A stretch of 63,785 nt of DNA, filler included, from Hyphochytrium catenoides (GCA_900088475.1; 9 parts of 9 records of this genome joined end to end with filler, not necessarily neighbours in it); one strand, 5' to 3'; positions 40,450 through 49,365 are shown, numbered from the whole stretch's first letter. Notes: generated by a model not told the origin, from the sequence alone. Made by a program: numbers and translations.

Positions 40450-43400
40450 CCCCATGCGCTGGATCGGAAGTTGAGACTCGCACTTGCAATGAGGGAGCAT
40501 GCCAGACAGGTAGTACACGGCACCCCACTCATTCGTCGGTCGTCGGGTTCTAAATACTTTTTACCTTGATCTTTTACTTTGTTTAGCTTCTCCCTCTGTT
40601 TCCTTTCTTTCGTGCCTCATGTCTGATGTGTCCCATATGGGCATATAAACGGATTTCTCTCTCTCTCTATGGTCTCATTCCATCCCTGTGCTTACTTAAC
40701 GCCGTTCCTCGCCTTTTCCTAGTTGTGGATGGCGGTTATACGCCGTGGTTACCTTGGACAGAGTGCTCCTCGACCTGTCCCACCGATCGCGGAGGCTTTT
40801 TCATTGGCAACCAGACCCGCAGTCGGAGCTGCACGAGTCCAACCCCTTCCGCTAGCGGCAAGGACTGCTCATTATTGGGCAGCAGCACCGAGACGAGGCA
40901 ATGCAATGTCGCAGAGTGTCCGTGGCCCGCGCCACTATGTCCTCCATATCCCCGAGGTGAGGGATGAGGCAAACGAGTTAGTCTCGATGAAAACAGCCGT
41001 CCTTGGTCCTTTCGGCCCTTTGTTCTGTGTTGCCTCTTTCTCTTTCTCTGTAAACAACTTCTTCCATCCCTCACCCCCATGAAGGTCTTTCTGAAATTTC
41101 GGTTCCATGCTCTTCTACAATCAGGTACGCCTATTATCCGCTTCGAGAGGTCCCTACCGGAGTGCTCCGGACATGGTTCTTGCGTGCGTCCTCGCGGATG
41201 CACAATCAATAATGACTGCAGATATTCCTGTCAGTGCCAGACGAATTGGGCGGGAGAGGACTGCTCCATCACTTCTGAGCAATTCCTCGAGCGCCAGAAC
41301 ATTCGTCAGAGCCTCGTGGAAGCTGTTGCTAATGCCTCACAGCTGATTGTACGTGACTGAGCACCAAGTCTCCTCATTCATAGCCATAATATCTCTAGTC
41401 TCTCTCATCTGTTCCTCTTCTCGCACACTTACCCTGAAATTTAGCCTGAGAGGTCTGTTATCCAACTCAGTCCACCTCTGCTGACTGACAGTACCTCCCT
41501 GTGTTTGGTATAGTTTATTGCTCCAGAGTCCGTCAGCGCTGTAGCTTCATCTCTATCCACGATCACATCGGCCACGTCAGAACTGAATGCTGCGACAGTG
41601 GCGATGACTCTCAGCTTGACCAATTCTCTCATCGAAATGGCGACCCTGATTCCAAGCGGGCTTACTGCCAAGAGTTCCCAGGAGATCCTGTTAAGTCTTA
41701 GTAATGCGCTGGAGGCCAGTGCGAATCCCCTTCATAGTCTTTCTAAACAAGATGAGGACGGACCGCTTGATTTTGAACTCGCTGTTGCTCCTGCGGACGT
41801 CAGTAGCACTGTGGCAGCGGCAGCTGATGGGCTGGTGGACCTGTTTCTCGGCGAAGCTGCACCAGGGGAGGAGATGGTGACTCTGAATAGTCCCGGCCTA
41901 GTAGTGGGTGCAATGAGGACGGAGGCCAGGTCTTATTCTGCGCTGCAGCTGCTGGACGGGCCTAGCGTCACGATCCCCGAGGAGAGCATTGACAGCTCGG
42001 ACGTCGTAGATCTTAAGGTCGGCTCTATTGACTCTCTAAGCTGTGTTGCCCTCTTGATGGAACTCGCACCAAGCTGACTTTTCTCGGCTGTCCGCAGATG
42101 CTCCAATGGAATATCCCGCCATACAATGCTGATTCCGAACTGAGGACCCAAGTTGTGAGCATTCGCATGGCCTACTCTGGGAATCGAAGCGAGTACCGAG
42201 TGCACTACCTCTCCGCACCACTCATAATAGAGTTCCATCTGTCAAACTTCAATCTGTCTGAAGGTACATCTCCCCAGGATAATTTGAGAGACCTTCCTCT
42301 GTCTTGTCTCTGGTATCCATGCTTAATTCCACCCGAAGTTCACACCTCAAAGGCTATCGTTGGAACAGGCTTTTCCTTCGCTTACGCCTTTACGTTTGCT
42401 TCTTCATCGTTCGACCTCCTAACGAGGCCTCTTGATCCTCGACAGGGTCGCACCCGATCTGTCGCAGTTGGAACTATAACTTAGAAGAATGGGTCACCGA
42501 TGGCATTTTGCAGCGAGGACTTGTGCTCACCGAGATGGGAAGAGCCAAGCTTACCTGTGAGGTGACACACCTCACAGAATTCAGTGCGACTGGGGATGCC
42601 ATCACCCCCCAAATCAATCAGGTGCTTGCTCAAACGTCCTTGTTCTCTTTGCCCATCTTCAGCCTGTCTCTTTGAACAGACTCAAACTACCTACGACCCT
42701 GAGAGCTCAAACGTGCCCTTCTTTTCGTCTACTGTCCCTCAGATCGACCTCGTTGCCGATGCACGATATCTGGTAGACTTTGAGACAAACAAGGTTCCAG
42801 CGATGATAGTCATCGCCTTCTTAACCTGCTTTGGTCTGCTCGTGGTGATCTCCTATGCACTGGACAGGAAGGAAGCGGAACTATTGAAAGAGCAATTAGA
42901 AGACTCATATGTACGTCTAGGGGATCTGGCGGAAGTGCTGGATGACAGCGACGATGAGGACGACAACACTATACCGACCAACACCACCAGCGCTAAAACA
43001 GCCTCCACACGGAGTGCTGACGGAACTACCGAGGACCCTGAGACCCGGCCTAAGGATTCAGCAGTAGCTGGTGTATCTATCAAAAGCGCTGTACTGCAAG
43101 CTCCTTGGCAGATTCTATTAGTCACTTTCTCGGCTCTGCAGACAGAGGGAAAGGCTATCGGAGTGCTGAAGCCCGACCTTCGCTCCCACATCACACTGTC
43201 CAGGCCCCAGCGACTGGTTATCTTCTGTGCCACGGTGATGATTACACTCACAGTCAGCGCCGTTTTCCATGGAAAAAGACAGCCTAACTTTGCTAGCACT
43301 CTAGTCGTCTCCGTCCTGTCTATGATGGTCACACTGCCCGTGGACCTGGGGCTTCCGTCCGCTTTTAAGGCGCTCCAGATGCCGTTCAAATCATTCACCC

Positions 43401-45205
43401 GTTCTGAGTGGAAGGGCAAGGGTCTCGATTTGAGTATGGCGTATCGCGTAATCTGTTGCTGTTGCTGCAAGCGCAAACCAAAGAAAAAAGGTGTAGCTTC
43501 CGTGCTAGATAATGCCAAGCCGAGTAACAATGCACATCGCAAGATGGCTGTGGTACGGAACCCAGACGTCGGGCCTGCGCTCTTCCCTGTGAAACCTCTT
43601 GAGCCATCCGGCAGTGGTGTCTCCTACGGCGGGGTCCAGCAAGAGTTGGAGTCGATAGGACAGACTACCGAGAGCTTATGGAAGGTTGTTCGTGTACAGT
43701 CCCCCAGGGCCGTGAAAAGTGAAGCACTAGCTGAGACCCAATCTTCTAGCAGGGATCGTGCAAGACTGAGTGTAATATCTTTGACGCCAACAGCTTCTCC
43801 ACCCCCGAAAGCTTCCACATCTTCTTCTAGGCCCGAGAGTCCCACACTTAGGTCAAGCACTCCACTATCTCCTCAACCGACGGGACGGCTTCGTACCGCA
43901 TCGTTGGGTCACCAGCAGAGCTCCGAGCACCATCGCCCGCGATCGCCGCTCGACGTGTCGAATATTGGCCGATTGAAGGTTGGAGAGCTGCCACAACCAC
44001 AAAGTGCACCGCGTAAGATTGTCGTAAGTAAGACATCTTTCCAGTCGGCGGGCGTGTTGCAAAAAGGGGCCAACCATACGCTGGTAGAGGAAGACCTAGA
44101 GTTAGTGAAGCCGTACAATGCACTCCCTGGGGTGCTTGTTTTGGTCGGAGTTGGACTACTCATCATAGGCTTCCTCTTCCTTGTAGCAGCGGGTTACTTG
44201 GCGCTATATCCGGACAAAGCTTATGGCTACGGCGGCTTGCTAGCCTTCATTCCTGGCCTATTGGGCTTGCTGGGCATCTTAGTGAATGGTATCGCCATGT
44301 ACGGCCTCAGTAAGCGCCGACGTGGCACCACACGCACGAGCGGTGCTTATCTTTTCCTTCTGGGTTTGCTAATGGCCTCTATGGCGGTCGCTTTTAGCTC
44401 TTTGCCAGACTCTCCACGACTGAAGGCGTTTATTACCAACCCTTTGCGTGACACCTGGGACATGCATGTTAAAGCCCTTGATGACCCGGCAAAGGCAGGG
44501 CCATCCCGAACCTTCCTCCAGTCTGTTCAGCACGACCTCCAGTGCTGCGGGTTTGAAGATCTCCCGGTTGATTATTACCGCCGCAGTTGTCCTTATGCAC
44601 AAAACCTCTCAACTTGTAAGGAAAAGCTATTGGAAGCTCTGTTGACCGAGGGTCAACCTGTAGCAATGGGACTGTGTGCGATTGGAATGGTGCACGCCGT
44701 GTTTGGGGCGTTGCTAGTGTGGATCAGCCTCCAGCCTCCCTTCTACGCAACCAATCCGGTGACTGAGGAGCTGAAGATCCGCAAGCTATGCCTGGCTCTG
44801 CAAGTGCTTCTGGACGGACGGCCGATTGACAAAACCATGATTAAGGCGGCGACGACAATTCAAAAAGGATATCGGATCCATTTTTACCGTCTCAGGCAAA
44901 CGCGGATGCAGGAGATACGGGAATGGAGACAGAAAAGCAAGCTACGACGATTCCTCTTAGCTCTCCTCTATGTGGCGGCTATCTCCGTCATCCTCTTCTG
45001 TCTATATGTTAACCTCGTCTTCGCGATGAAGTTTGATGAGGAGAGACAGCGTTCCTGGCTCACAACCTCCATGATCGCAATCCTGGTAGATCTCTTCATC
45101 AGAGAGCCCACCACTGTCTTCTTCAAGGCGGTCAAGGAAGCGCTTCTCTACTTTATACCCAAGGATCTTAGAAAGAGTAAGAATAAGTTTAAGGGCAGGC
45201 GCTGA
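40450..45205 (+). CDS. Polycystin-1-like receptor, 5'-partial: TSP1 x>=2, EGF, GAIN/GPS, 5 PKD1-like TMs with an internal tetraspanin module and IQ motif
   Basis: Approximate exons 40450-40508, 40723-40956, 41124-41348, 41514-42017, 42099-42312, 42469-42621, 42743-45205. TSP1 VDGGYTPWLPWTECSSTC...TRSRSC; EGF CSGHGSC...CQCQTNWAGEDC; GPS W...EWVTDG...LTCEVTHL|TEFS (42568-42585); PKD1-like LSRPQRL...VSAVFHG and FAMKFD...SWL...DLFIREP; four TMs around LQCCG (44543); IQKGYR (44858). Confidence 0.85.
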
Positions 45206-47714
45206 CGGACTTTTGCCATTATATCGCTTTTGTTGGTTGTCTCAGTGTGTGCTTCTTAGAAGATGCCCTGATTTTCTCCTTTCTCCTTTCTTCGTGTGTT
45301 GCGATCATCTTTTAGGACGTTGCTAATATAAAACCTGCGGTATATTTTGCTAGATAGACATATGAATCTCATACCTTTGTCATGCCTGTCGCGCCTTCAT
45401 GCATGGTCAGGCCAAAGGCATTGGGCTAGTCTTGTCGGCACAAACTCTGAGTAACTCAATCGCCCTTCTGCCTCGACTATTTCCTCTCAGAGGCTCAGAA
45501 GTAGTCTCAACAATCAAGAGAACAGACAAGGAATTGGACAGTGCCCTAGTCATGGAGGAGGGAGAATGACCGGTAGAATTAGAGGAGACGAGAGATTTGG
45601 CAGGATTCTGACGTTTGACCGGCCTATCGGATGTCTTATTATCGGCTTGTTTCCCTCGCTGCCCCTCTCTTAATAGCAGATAGGCTATTGACGATGTAAG
45701 TGCTGCTGACGACCACACCGGCGACTCAGCATAACAAGAACCACGCTGACGACACGGTCAGTATGAGCAATCACCCAAGAACGCGGACGCATCATAGCAT
45801 TAGTTCAACGAAAGGAACTAAGAGGGCCTCGTCGACCTCCGGCTCCGGGTCTCCTGCCATGAAGACAAGGTTGAGATCATTCCAAAAGTTGCAAGAATGT
45901 GGATCCGAATGACCTGTCAATGGACAAAAACCTATCAATCCGCGCCACTGTCTCTCCTCCTTCAAATCATAGCCTACTTATTCAAAAGTTTCCCATCAGG
46001 AGGGAATTTCGCCAGGGCGTCAACTCTCTAGTCTCCAAGTCTTATGTGAATGTCTCCTGGCGGCAACAGAAATAGGATCGGCTCTACTTGAAGATCGCTC
46101 ATGACTAATAATAATACGATGCCCTCATGGGCCTCATGACATCTTGAACTGACTAGGAGCTATAGTGACAATGACTGAGTCAACCACCCGTTGTAGTATG
46201 TAACCTAAATATACTTAAGCGAGCACTGCTTCAAACTGCTGCGCCCCCACTGGAAGATGCAGGGCCGGATAAAGCTGGTTGCGAGCTGTTACCTGTCATC
46301 GGCGTGGGGACTCTCCTGCAGTAGGGTTTCTCTGTCATCAGTGTGGCGACTGTATTAGGGGTTCTCTGTATAGGGTCATGTTAGTATTCTCCAAGAACCA
46401 AGCAAAGGATGTTATTGACATACCTCTACTTGTACTAAGTGGTACATACCAAGGTCCCGTAGGTTTGCGTACCGGTGCTTTCATCGCTCTCCGTGTTCCA
46501 GATCAGTATACTAGATTCCACAAGGAGATGGCTGAGATAGCGGGACCGTAAATGAATCTGCAAGATTTTTAGCTTTATCCCGAAGATGAAGCTAATAACT
46601 ACCAAGACTCAAAGGAGAAAGAAAGGGAAGAAGGAGAAGAAGAAGATGAAGAAGAGACGAGCTACGGAGTCCAGGACTCTTCTTCAACACGCTTATTATC
46701 AATACCTCTACAGCCATCTCCACCTACAGTTTGCAGCCTCCCCTCTCCCCTCCCTTTTCGTTCTTCATCAATGAAAACAACCTTGTCTTCCCAAGGCCGG
46801 TAGTTCGTCTCTAGAAGTACCGATATTATGTATACAGCTGCAGTTGATAGAACTACTGTTCCATAGAAAACTTATGCCATATCGGGACTGTGGTGTAGTA
46901 GTAGTAGTGCTGTCCTTCCAGCGACATAGAGGCTTGTACCTTGCCAGTCTAATAATCTTTGACTAACGTGTAGGAAGAAGGAACTCTCTAGAACTACTCG
47001 AGCGGCTGTCTGGGGCCCAATAACCATGCAACCAACTATGGATGATGTCAGCCCTATGTACAATTTTCAGCAGTACCGTTACAGCAGGAGGTAGCGGAGA
47101 CCGGAGGCTGAAAGGGCATGGGAGTAGACGACACCGAAGCACCCTGTTTGAGCAAGACAAACGAACACGAAAGGCTTAGGGCTTCTATGTGGCCTCTCTT
47201 TCTCCTGATCTTCCTACAGCACTCTGTCTCTCACTTTTTTACCCTTAATAGGTGTTCAAGAGCCCATAAAGACACTTGCTCCCAAATGGCTTCTATCTTA
47301 TTTTACTAGTTCCCCATTTGCTCTATGGTCCCCTATTGAGAAGAGACACACAACCAAATACAAATCTCATTCTCTCTCTGTCCCTCTCTCTCCTTCTGAC
47401 CTCTCTCTCGGTCTCCTNNNNNNNNNNNNNNNNNNNNNNNNNNNNNNNNNNNNNNNNNNNNNNNNNCGCTGTGCAAGGGAACTGCGAAGCGGCAGAAGAC
47501 ATCACGCGCCGTCGCTCGTAACAGCTATTATGAAAAGGCAGATTCATCCAGCAGTTATACGGATTTTCAAGATGGCTTTGGAATGTGCAGGTCATAATAG
47601 CAGCAGCTACCGTTAGTATAAAGTGCTCTCGTGAGGAACGCATCCCACGTCTAGGATGAACATATTGAATCAAGGGTCAAAGAGGGCACATGCTAAAACT
47701 GAAGGGTATCTCCA

Positions 47715-49365
47715 ATGATGTCGAGCCTCGACATCCTGAGATTACTGTGCCATGTCTTGTTGCTGTTAGGTTGGAGCAAACTGCTCTTCGCGGTCTCAAC
47801 GCCGTATCTCATCCAGCCTGACCTGTCCACCTGGACGCCAATATCATGGTGCAACGGGACTACTCCAGCCTATCTCTACCATCTTGATCTGATAAAAATA
47901 CTGGCGGCTGACATCCAGAGGGTTGCTGTTCAGAGCCGACAAGATGAAGATTTTTGGTTTGTNNNNNNNNNNNNNNNNNNNNNNNNNNNNNNNNNNNNNN
48001 NNNCAACTTGTCCAGTTGTTTCAATGCTTTCCCAATGGAACCTGGACCGCCAAGCCACCACATGATGTGAAACTTCTAGCCAGCAGTCCAGAAGCTTCCG
48101 TCTTGATTGCCACGAAGGGCGCTTATGCAGCAGAGTAAGTGCACCTTCTCTTAAGCTATCTCCGTTTCTAACCTCCTGTCTGCAATGCAGATACCTGAAG
48201 GCAGCACGAGGCAGCAGAGCTGTCCGGAGACTTCAAGCAGGCTATCAGATGGGTGAGAGTTTCAGTCGGAGCTCATCTTCCTGGAGTGGAACAATGCTAT
48301 CATCCTTACACTCAGGAACGGATCCCGACGATTTGGCCTCATTCGCGAACGGAGACTTCTACGCCGCAGATGGCGGTCTCAGTACTGCCGCCTGCAAGTG
48401 GTCCCCTACCTCTCCCATTAAAGAGCTCGAGGTCTGGATATCAAAGGTAAAGTGTTCAATCCTGACAAGAAATGCAGACAGTTAACCTGTCTCACGATAC
48501 ATTCTGTGTACTGCATCTTGGCTCAACTATCTGGCAACTCGTTCTTAGCCACTGCACTCATCAAGCGTTCGCCTCGGGGACATTGAAATTCTGGGAAGCT
48601 CCGAGGATATCCCTGTACTGGTTGGGAACAGCGAGGACGGTGGGCCATTGGTGATGCTCACAAGGGATGGCGCACTTTTGTATCCAGAGTTCCGTGTTAG
48701 CGGCCGCCTGTTACAACCTACAGAAGCTACTGCCATCCCGTCACTGTTCAATGCCACCTATCGGTTCAGCGGCATCTTTGACAGAGAGCTCAGACCCCTA
48801 CAACTGGAGCTTGGAGAGGACAAAGACCTGGCGGAGAGTGTTCTCATTCCCTTCAAAGGCTTGGCCCATCAAACTGCATTTGAGCATTGGCTTACCTTGA
48901 ACATCTCCTACAAGGACGTCTGGCTTGAAGAGGATCAAGAGACGGTGATACCCCTCCGGTTCCGGAATATCTCGATGTCCTGGGTGGTTGGATCTATTCT
49001 AGAAGTGAATCCAGATGCTGTTCGTGCCTCGGTGCGCTTACGGAGGCCGCCTCCTTCACCTGGAGGGACAGTGTTCATTTCGACCGACTTCCCTTCCATA
49101 GTCGATGTAGAGGGGTCGCCACCCGGTACGGCGGAGATCACTTTCACCACGACAAACTGGAACGTTACGAGGAACTTCAGCATCACCCACATCTGGAATT
49201 CATCGTCCTTAGAGAGTGATCGAGAGGGCACCGTTCTCTTTACTTTCACTAGCCTCACCCCGAATATGTCACTCTCGTCTTTCCCTTGCCGAGATTCATC
49301 TACTAGTCCGCCAGTCGGCTTGCCCTCAAGTCCCTCGATGTGCCCATTCTATGAAGATCAGAGCC
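47715..49365 (+). CDS. Secreted or surface protein of unknown function, multi-exon, 3'-partial
   Basis: Signal-peptide-like N-terminus MMSSLDILRLLCHVLLLLGWSKLLFA; GT-AG introns ~48135-48190 and 48447-48548; long last exon with many N-x-S/T sequons and ITFTTTNWNVTRNFSI resembling Calx-beta/cadherin-like beta-sandwich motifs. Confidence 0.6.

Follow-up and report, generated by a model that had tools for sequence, protein, structure and literature searches.

Can a whole tetraspanin be housed inside the membrane domain of another multi-pass protein? This question is raised by a gene of Hyphochytrium catenoides (GCA_900088475.1). It lies in a stretch of 63,785 nucleotides (nt), filler included, in which nine parts of this genome are joined end to end without necessarily being neighbours; the window denotes this whole stretch, and positions are counted from its first letter. 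The piece analysed is 40450-49365, and the gene, which is multi-exon and eukaryotic, is on the + strand. The best explanation, and quite a probable one, is that the piece contains the 3' part of a real gene for a receptor of the polycystin-1/REJ superfamily. This receptor would have nine transmembrane helices (TMs), with a tetraspanin placed in the TM3-TM4 loop of a polycystin-1-like domain. An earlier note, made from the sequence alone, had proposed such a GPS receptor with a tetraspanin and an IQ motif in its cytoplasmic loop and no channel domain.

According to this explanation, the ectodomain would be built from TSP1 repeats and an EGF-like module, then a GAIN region with GPS at its end; REJ and PKD domains, as seen in relatives, would presumably lie outside the piece. 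The membrane part would correspond to the N-terminal five-TM domain of polycystin-1 (TM1; TM2-3; TM4-5), PLAT and the six-TM channel domain being absent, and a family-conserved IQ helix would stand just ahead of the last TM hairpin. Because the insert adds four TMs, the topology of the host domain would be kept.

The embedded tetraspanin and its polycystin-1-like scaffold

The membrane part is encoded by an open reading frame (ORF) of 873 codons (42584-45205, +, frame 2), which is open throughout. Amino acids (aa) are numbered from its first codon at 42584, while the spliced coding part starts at 42743. A second numbering (q) starts at 42680 with the 841-aa search query, so that q = aa - 32. 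The exons were searched one by one, each separately. The features of the terminal exon are as follows.

42743-45205, +: terminal exon, 820 codons, nine TM helices
42743-42850, +: second half of the stalk, IDLVADARYLVDFETNK, and TM1 (42794-42850), from hydropathy; the PKD1 model alignment begins at the stalk end
42851-43081, +: acidic, disordered cytoplasmic loop of 118 aa at the position of PLAT in PKD1; predicted local distance difference test score (pLDDT) <50
43082-43380, +: PKD1-like module with pre-TM2 helices, LSRPQRL, TM2 (43214-43270) and TM3 (43298-43354), from the A1 profile
43454-43489, +: CCCCC-KRKPKKK cluster, CCCCCKRKPKKK, from the sequence
43490-44077, +: disordered Ser/Pro-rich cytoplasmic linker, pLDDT 27-45
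44132-44716, +: embedded tetraspanin with TMs at 44132-44188, 44237-44293, 44348-44404 and 44660-44716, from Pfam PF00335 and fold
44846-44890, +: IQ-like motif, AATTIQKGYRIHFYR, on a helix running into TM8, from a sub-threshold Pfam IQ match and the family columns
44954-45109, +: PKD1-like TM4-TM5 hairpin, consisting of TM8 (44954-45010) and TM9 (~45053-45100), from the A2 profile and structure alignment
45110-45205, +: short, basic tail in the cytoplasm, closed by the stop codon (45203-45205); the proteins of relatives stop here too

By sequence profile and by predicted fold, the middle four TMs are a true tetraspanin. Pfam PF00335 matches with 42.2 bits in the whole ORF and 44.3 bits in the domain alone (gathering cut-off 32.1). 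The TMs are located at aa 517-535, 552-570, 589-607 and 693-711, with loops of ~12, 14 and 81 aa between them. These make a short outer loop (extracellular loop 1, EC1), a short basic inner loop and a large outer loop (EC2), which is the spacing of tetraspanins. EC2 includes CCG at 44543-44551 (aa 654-656) and further Cys residues at 44588 (aa 669) and 44615 (aa 678). PF00335 is also matched by 20/20 relatives in an alignment of this domain (A4), where W, Q, CCG, C and GC are conserved in EC2, and CCG and one later Cys are invariant. The module is not free-standing but sits within the 820-codon exon with PKD1-like TM3 and TM4 on either side.

An AlphaFold model of the domain from 20 family sequences has a mean pLDDT of 85.3 and a predicted template modelling score (pTM) of 0.77. 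When it is compared with PDB by Foldseek, the best 12 matches are all tetraspanins or large loops of CD81. CD53 is the best of them (E=2.2e-3, probability 1.00, TM-score on query 0.56), and CD9, CD81, PRPH2/ROM1, uroplakins and Tspan15 are found further down. The E-values of these matches stay short of 1e-3, and other competing folds are absent. Alignment with the CD81 large extracellular loop (LEL) gives TM-scores of 0.54-0.64 and a root mean square deviation (rmsd) of 3.7-4.0. The best 9 Foldseek matches of the whole-protein model are also tetraspanins, and VIA-align places PRPH2 (Z 10.6 over 216 aa) and CD53 (Z 10.1 over 195 aa) on it. The four TMs with tetraspanin spacing, CCG and two more Cys described in the earlier note are thus borne out by Pfam score and fold alike. 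Searching PDB with the single sequence gives a weak match of CD9 at EC2 (E=0.2) and none of PKD1. Word-index protein searches with the whole ORF, the tetraspanin part and alignment A4 return nothing, free tetraspanins included, and a feature search of the ESM Atlas gives no usable match.

The flanking TMs have no match in Pfam or PDB as a single sequence. Two profiles of the family do find one. Profile A1 covers the pre-TM2 helices, TM2 and TM3 (30 sequences; consensus R..H.W.S....P.......TRPQR...L.A..L..MAV.A.F.G..P), and its best PDB match is polycystin-1 (6a70_B 233-333, E=0.0014), at the segment directly behind PLAT. Profile A2 covers the IQ helix, TM8 and TM9 (60 sequences; consensus AA..IQ...RG...R ... 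LLFGVKF...Q..AW...S..S...D.....P) and matches the same chain at 537-604 (E=8.5e-4). The two matches are colinear, flank PKD1's own long cytoplasmic loop, and are the best non-IQ matches among 177,635 sequences. H-W-S, TRxQR, NA-F/YG and WL-S...EP are motifs common to PKD1 and the scaffold.

A whole-exon AlphaFold model from a 24-sequence alignment has helical parts with pLDDT 75-95 and disordered loops. Compared with 48,161 PDB representatives by VIA-align, it matches PKD1 (8z6b_A) at rank 1 with Z=18.0 and rmsd 3.5 over 193 residues, model residues 20-816 being aligned with PKD1 3063-3610. Rank 2 (Z 11.8) goes to a generic four-helix bundle, which is aligned with the tetraspanin. Unlike VIA-align, Foldseek does not recover PKD1 from PDB with the whole model. 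In a fold search of the ESM Atlas, the first three rows include clusters named 'Tetraspanin' and 'Polycystic kidney disease protein 1-like 2'. On these profiles and models, the flanking five TMs are homologous to polycystin-1 TM1-5. It is very improbable that they form instead an unrelated helical bundle that travels with REJ/GPS ectodomains. Such a bundle would agree with profile E-values of just ~1e-3, and middling structural Z-scores are common for helical bundles. However, two separate modules match the correct PKD1 segments in the correct order, the PKD1 motifs are shared, Z=18 is six units over the next match, and the relatives have the REJ+GPS context.

The IQ-like copy in Hyphochytrium reads IQKGYRIHFYR. 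At the same columns of A2, Pfam IQ is found in 29/60 relatives (best E=1e-5), and the N-terminal part of the A2 profile matches the IQ motifs of RSP23 (5e-6), Sp17 and myosin-5A, as well as that of Nav1.4. One relative, P0023, has IQ at these columns though the tetraspanin insert is absent. The IQ helix would therefore be part of the scaffold, not of the insert, since 29/60 members match and P0023 is among them. The helix appears conserved at family level, and the Hyphochytrium copy is a putative calmodulin site. The IQ motif of the earlier note is present at 44846-44890 and family-conserved, but in this copy it falls below the Pfam cut-off.

Hydropathy gives nine hydrophobic segments in a 1+2+4+2 pattern, eight of them clear and TM9 weaker. 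The inner loops contain 13, 38, 5 and 16 Lys and Arg (K+R) and the tail has 10, whereas the three short outer loops contain 1, 1 and 2. EC2, of 81 aa, has 10 K+R, together with four Cys and one N-glycosylation sequon. This charge distribution fits a predicted nine-TM topology with the N-terminus outside. The nine TMs with EC2 outside that the earlier note expected are in agreement with both hydropathy and K+R distribution. Other parts of its description also hold. TM1 is followed by a PKD1-like TM2/TM3 with LSRPQRL (A1 profile; PKD1 Z=18.0), the CCCCC-KRKPKKK cluster is present at 43454-43489 with the long Ser/Pro loop downstream, and the PKD1-like TM4/TM5 (A2 profile), with FAMKF / SWL / DLFIREP within 45020-45109, is followed by the stop codon 33 aa beyond TM9. 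The Ser/Pro-rich stretch of ~210 aa is modelled as disordered by AlphaFold. The cluster is likely a palmitoylation site combined with a polybasic membrane anchor, as predicted from its sequence; Cys-plus-basic stretches exist at its columns in P0001, P0005 and P0013.

Pfam finds no PLAT in the ORF or in the 18 relatives scanned, and no PKD_channel in the ORF; a channel domain is found in none of the relatives scanned. The lack of both domains noted earlier is thus a feature of the relatives as well. Two other identities were rejected. An adhesion G protein-coupled receptor (GPCR; class B2) has no support, as there is no 7tm_2 match and, structurally, the membrane part is matched best by PKD1 and not by a GPCR. 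A full 11-TM polycystin is rejected as neither PLAT nor a channel domain is found.

Several points weigh against a polycystin-1/REJ receptor with a nested tetraspanin. The piece shows no REJ domain. The PKD1 profile matches are modest (E ~1e-3 each), and the training of AlphaFold could have included PKD1 structures. The IQ copy lacks the consensus Gly and scores 11.2-14.8 bits with a Pfam cut-off of 20.3. The organism has no RNA runs, so that transcription and splice junctions are predicted from DNA. Cleavage, palmitoylation, calmodulin binding and the scaffold role are all inferred.

Relatives and the history of the insert

An exhaustive HMMER search of 1.84 billion representative proteins finds 99 relatives (E<=1e-3). 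Their ectodomains contain PKD, REJ, EGF, TSP_1 and GPS, and the same membrane part follows, with Tetraspanin at 24-54 bits and IQ. For example, REJ is found at 56-239 bits in P0002, P0007, P0013, P0040, P0059, P0075 and P0086. The 1+2+4+2 layout with CCG recurs in the family. Every relative stops 10-70 aa past the last TM, and PLAT and the channel domain are in none of those scanned.

In Cantina marsupialis, Platysulcus tardus and Bicosoecida sp. CB-2014, single transcripts keep the order of REJ, TSP1, GPS, tetraspanin and IQ, and their proteins end at the same point as the Hyphochytrium protein. Cantina marsupialis has at least 4 paralogues. Other relatives are genome proteins of Cafeteria roenbergensis and a protein cluster including Rhodomonas salina, and the rest are from metagenomes and Logan assemblies. 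The closest relative, P0001, is 40% identical to the query. It is encoded on the Logan contig L001 of a related organism, whose layout at this locus (EGF / GAIN / GPS-exon / intron / terminal-exon) is the same as that of the Hyphochytrium locus. Judging from these sequences, the architecture is that of a conserved family in several stramenopile lineages, not confined to one gene. The relatives are named 'hypothetical protein' or 'PKD/REJ-like domain-containing protein' in the databases (the latter in UniRef for the Bicosoecida sp. CB-2014 relative), and the sources checked hold no specific family name.

The 4-TM block is not found in every member. P0099, P0069, P0023, P0030 and P0070 have both flanking modules without it. 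In P0099, for example, the TMs are at 2512; 2621 and 2649; and 2932 and 2956, and in P0070 the two flanking modules are ~20 aa apart. The cluster including Rhodomonas also keeps the five-TM scaffold, with the insert absent. The tetraspanin is therefore regarded as an insertion. These same relatives agree with the earlier suggestion that an even number of inserted TMs preserves the topology of the host.

The scaffold tree, made from the TM2-3 and TM8-9 modules, is unrooted and mostly unresolved. Nevertheless, a single clade of tetraspanin-bearing members is rejected by the approximately unbiased (AU) test (p=1.4e-6), and one well-supported clade mixes P0031, which has the tetraspanin, with the Cafeteria-type P0011, P0023 and P0058, which have no clear tetraspanin. 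Since the bearers are not one clade, gain, loss or degradation of the tetraspanin must have happened more than once. A single gain with later losses or decay is not distinguished from several gains, as the tree has no root.

In another group of relatives (P0012, P0013, P0025, P0059, P0020, P0029, P0034 and P0049), four TMs ~30-40 aa apart replace the tetraspanin; CCG and the large loop are absent. The family tetraspanin hidden Markov model (HMM) has no match to this block in P0012, P0013, P0025, P0029 and P0059, and Pfam finds nothing in it in the six relatives scanned (all but P0029 and P0049). From its sequence, the block could be either a tetraspanin in reduced form or an insert of another kind.

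Full-text literature searches (InterPro not covered) found no description of a tetraspanin inside a polycystin-1-like receptor. The earlier note regarded the architecture as unfamiliar. This stands as far as the literature is concerned, but the architecture is shared by a conserved family of several stramenopile lineages. While the polycystin-1/REJ kind of receptor is already known, what appears new from these sequences is one cut down to its five-TM domain with a nested tetraspanin and an IQ helix.

The nesting of a whole multi-pass membrane domain in another is an uncommon architecture, and the fusion unites two heavily studied animal families, the tetraspanins and polycystin-1, the main polycystic kidney disease protein. 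It indicates that the PKD1 five-TM domain exists without PLAT or the channel domain far outside animals, and that the PKD1-type TM3-TM4 loop tolerates a four-TM insert. Consistent annotation of the 99 relatives is now possible.

Upstream exons, splicing and sequence variation

The exons before the membrane part are as follows.

40452-40505, +: C-terminal end of a TSP1-like repeat, PCAGSEVETRTCNEGACQ, from frame translation; too short for Pfam
40737-40922, +: thrombospondin type 1 repeat, Pfam TSP_1 24.6 bits (cut-off 21.6)
41154-41267, +: EGF-like module with six Cys, Pfam EGF families 16-18 bits, below cut-offs
41268-42380, +: presumed GAIN region of ~1.1 kb, about three exons, from its position before GPS and colinear ORFs in L001
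42448-42621, +: GPS motif at the end of its exon, frame 1, Pfam GPS 23.2 bits (cut-off 22.5)
42622-42742, +: intron of 121 nt, CAG|GTGCTT ... TCCCTCAG|ATC, leading from frame 1 to frame 2

The first TSP1-like exon is incomplete at the border of the piece, outside which the gene continues in the 5' direction. The position of the EGF-like module matches that in L001. In the GAIN region, a Pfam scan of 41268-42380 gives no match; upstream of 42448 several plausible splice sites are read, and the exact borders of the GAIN exons are approximate. Of the domains named for HMMER searches in the earlier note, Tetraspanin, GPS and TSP_1 are above their cut-offs, but IQ and EGF are below.

The GPS contains CEVTHLTEFSA at 42556-42588. 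Autoproteolysis is predicted to occur within it at HL|T, between 42573 and 42574; the stalk that follows has TEFSATGDAITPQINQ as its first half, and PQINQ is followed by a GT donor at 42622. The GPS is in frame 1 and the TM exon in frame 2, with a GT..AG intron between them. The two are therefore not a single exon, and the 'one uninterrupted terminal exon' of the earlier note, which included the GPS, has to be divided.

Two AG acceptors, 42679 and 42742, keep the frame. On sequence comparison the intron 42622-42742 is favoured over the alternative with the acceptor 42679. With the 121-nt intron, the stalk aligns gap-free with relatives derived from transcripts (e.g., HLTDFSATLDLSVPEINVVDPVGDADLLLQYN in Cantina vs HLTEFSATGDAITPQINQ/IDLVADARYLVDFE in the Hyphochytrium gene). 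Two further reasons are that homology with the closest relative P0001 begins at 42746 and that four single-nucleotide polymorphisms (SNPs) cluster at 42685-42699. The locus L001 also supports this intron.

From HL|T to TM1 (42574-42621 + 42743-42793; alignment A3), the stalk is conserved in the family as F-S-A ... V-P-x-x-N-x-V-D-P-x-x-D-A-x-L-L ... N, and its length before TM1 is ~37 aa. A tethered stalk with a function, as in PKD1 and adhesion GPCRs, would be expected to show such conservation. The GPS (42448-42588) has two Cys (C...W...W...C-x-x-x-HLT), as opposed to four in adhesion GPCRs. The same two-Cys GPS is found in L001 (1460-1741), and the Cantina proteins have the same single Cys before HLT (C-x-x-x-HLT).

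Three DNA runs of one study hold the stretch, and there are no RNA runs for the organism. The contigs of run X1 cover 41572-42970 and 43443-45070, and those of run X2 cover 42583-43174, 43145-43943 and 44097-44817. Together, the contigs of the three runs span the terminal exon in all its parts, and insertions or deletions (indels) are absent within the ORF. The architecture is seen as one gene because the ORF is continuous, the DNA contigs bridge it, and L001 and the single transcripts share the order. The chance is next to nil that an annotation or assembly artefact, i.e., a separate tetraspanin gene or a misjoined contig in frame, has produced it. This could be argued from the lack of RNA evidence for the organism, but it is already largely refuted by the continuous ORF, by the contigs of three runs bridging all junctions, and by the same order in L001 and on single transcripts of three other genera. 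The misassembly that the earlier note had reckoned with is likewise not seen, as the contigs bridge the exon and the ORF is free of indels.

The SNP statements rest on the SNPs listed, beyond which there are 21 more. The listed SNPs in the terminal exon are mostly non-synonymous changes in the disordered linker. The sole one among them in the tetraspanin and TM parts is synonymous. This pattern is thus consistent with a coding gene whose folded parts are constrained. A decaying paralogue or pseudogene that has lost its function is extremely improbable. The many non-synonymous differences between samples, located in the disordered linker, the degenerate IQ motif and the lack of expression data would fit decay. 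Against it are 873 stop-free codons, the lack of ORF indels in any run, the single synonymous variant in the TM/tetraspanin parts among the listed SNPs, and the intact HL|T site and four EC2 Cys. Run X2 shows ~1% single-base differences from the window in 40450-45600, and its 1-nt indels (42387, 45475) all lie outside coding exons; this divergence seemingly represents a second haplotype or strain.

Proposed working, known counterparts and downstream sequence

If the gene does encode a polycystin-1/REJ receptor with a nested tetraspanin, it may work as follows. GAIN would cleave itself at HL|T, and the conserved stalk would keep both fragments together. The TSP1/EGF ectodomain, with REJ too in relatives, would bind matrix or cell-surface ligands. 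The built-in tetraspanin would serve as the receptor's own cis scaffold, as CD81 does for GPR56, and would bring the receptor into membrane domains of the tetraspanin type or cluster it there. The patch of five Cys and polybasic residues would fix the loop to the membrane, and calmodulin or a related EF-hand protein on the IQ helix would couple the receptor to Ca2+.

The closest counterpart is polycystin-1 (human PKD1; 6A70, 8Z6B) with its PKD1-like/REJ family. Both have GAIN/GPS immediately before TM1, a homologous TM1-TM5 domain (profile E ~1e-3 twice; fold Z=18) and a long, disordered TM3-TM4 cytoplasmic loop, and the ectodomains of relatives have REJ and PKD. Unlike polycystin-1, the Hyphochytrium protein has no PLAT between TM1 and TM2, no six-TM channel-like domain and no TOP domain, while it has a tetraspanin in the TM3-TM4 loop, an IQ helix before TM4, and TSP1/EGF modules in the ectodomain.

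The likeness to polycystin-1 could also mean that the protein is a non-pore auxiliary subunit of a separate PKD2/TRPP-type channel, with tetraspanin and IQ tuning trafficking or Ca2+ feedback. A scaffold homologous to polycystin-1 is in line with this, and a membrane-adjacent IQ is typical of Ca2+-regulated channels (the IQ matches include Nav1.4). However, the domain that is absent is the six-TM channel-like one, and it is this domain that places PKD1 among PKD2 subunits in the PKD2 tetramer. The channel-subunit role is ranked lower for this reason, and no channel gene is visible within the piece; we consider it improbable.

Tetraspanins such as CD81, CD9, CD53, the uroplakins and PRPH2/ROM1 share with the embedded module four TMs, a short EC1, a basic inner loop and a helical EC2 with CCG and two Cys. 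While these are free-standing proteins of 200-350 aa, the module is nested inside another multi-pass membrane domain. Its linkers are ~250 aa and disordered on one side and ~75 aa, helical and IQ-bearing on the other, and Cys residues beside its membrane helices are absent.

GPR56/ADGRG1 is found in a complex with CD81 (PMC6092491). As in that complex, a GPS receptor (cleaved in GPR56, predicted to be cleaved here) and a tetraspanin are in one membrane. In GPR56-CD81, however, they are separate proteins and the receptor is a seven-TM GPCR, whereas here they are one polypeptide and the receptor part is of the PKD1 five-TM type.

Covalent fusions often mark partners that work elsewhere as separate chains, and for a GPS receptor GPR56-CD81 is documented. 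As a 'Rosetta stone', the fusion could be taken to mean that polycystin-1-type GPS receptors and tetraspanins are ancient physical partners docking on the TM3/TM4 side, which we regard as speculative and rather unlikely. EC2 would then possibly touch GAIN or the stalk, gating the exposure of the tethered stalk. If this were true, free tetraspanins should serve animal polycystin-1 and other GPS receptors at the corresponding surface, and PKD1's little-studied N-terminal membrane domain would gain a testable function. The family is a natural system for studying how a tetraspanin serves a receptor cleaved at the GPS, as well as the function of PKD1's N-terminal membrane domain.

Another stramenopile receptor is known from Ectocarpus. 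Esi0130_0068 is a REJ+GPS membrane protein of 1427 aa that is expressed only in male gametes (PMC4700764). Like the Hyphochytrium family, it combines REJ and GPS in a stramenopile receptor whose C-terminal part is short and multi-TM and in which no channel is recognised; unlike in that family, a tetraspanin is not reported for it. By analogy, this suggests gamete or cell recognition as a possible setting for the superfamily in stramenopiles. The relative P0059 (1478 aa, JGI metagenome) resembles Esi0130_0068 by size and layout, with REJ, GPS at 949-987 and then nine TMs; the tetraspanin is replaced in it by four closely spaced, CCG-less TMs.

Downstream of the stop codon, no long ORF, tRNA or tandem repeat is found in ~3.4 kb (45206-48600). 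Assembly gaps are seen as N runs at 47418-47466 and 47963-48003. At 48648-49365 (+) there is an ORF of at least 239 aa, which runs into the end of the piece and gives no match in a Pfam scan. It has many N-glycosylation sequons (NAT, NIS, NVT, NFS, NSS, NMS) and may be the start of another gene for a secreted or surface protein.

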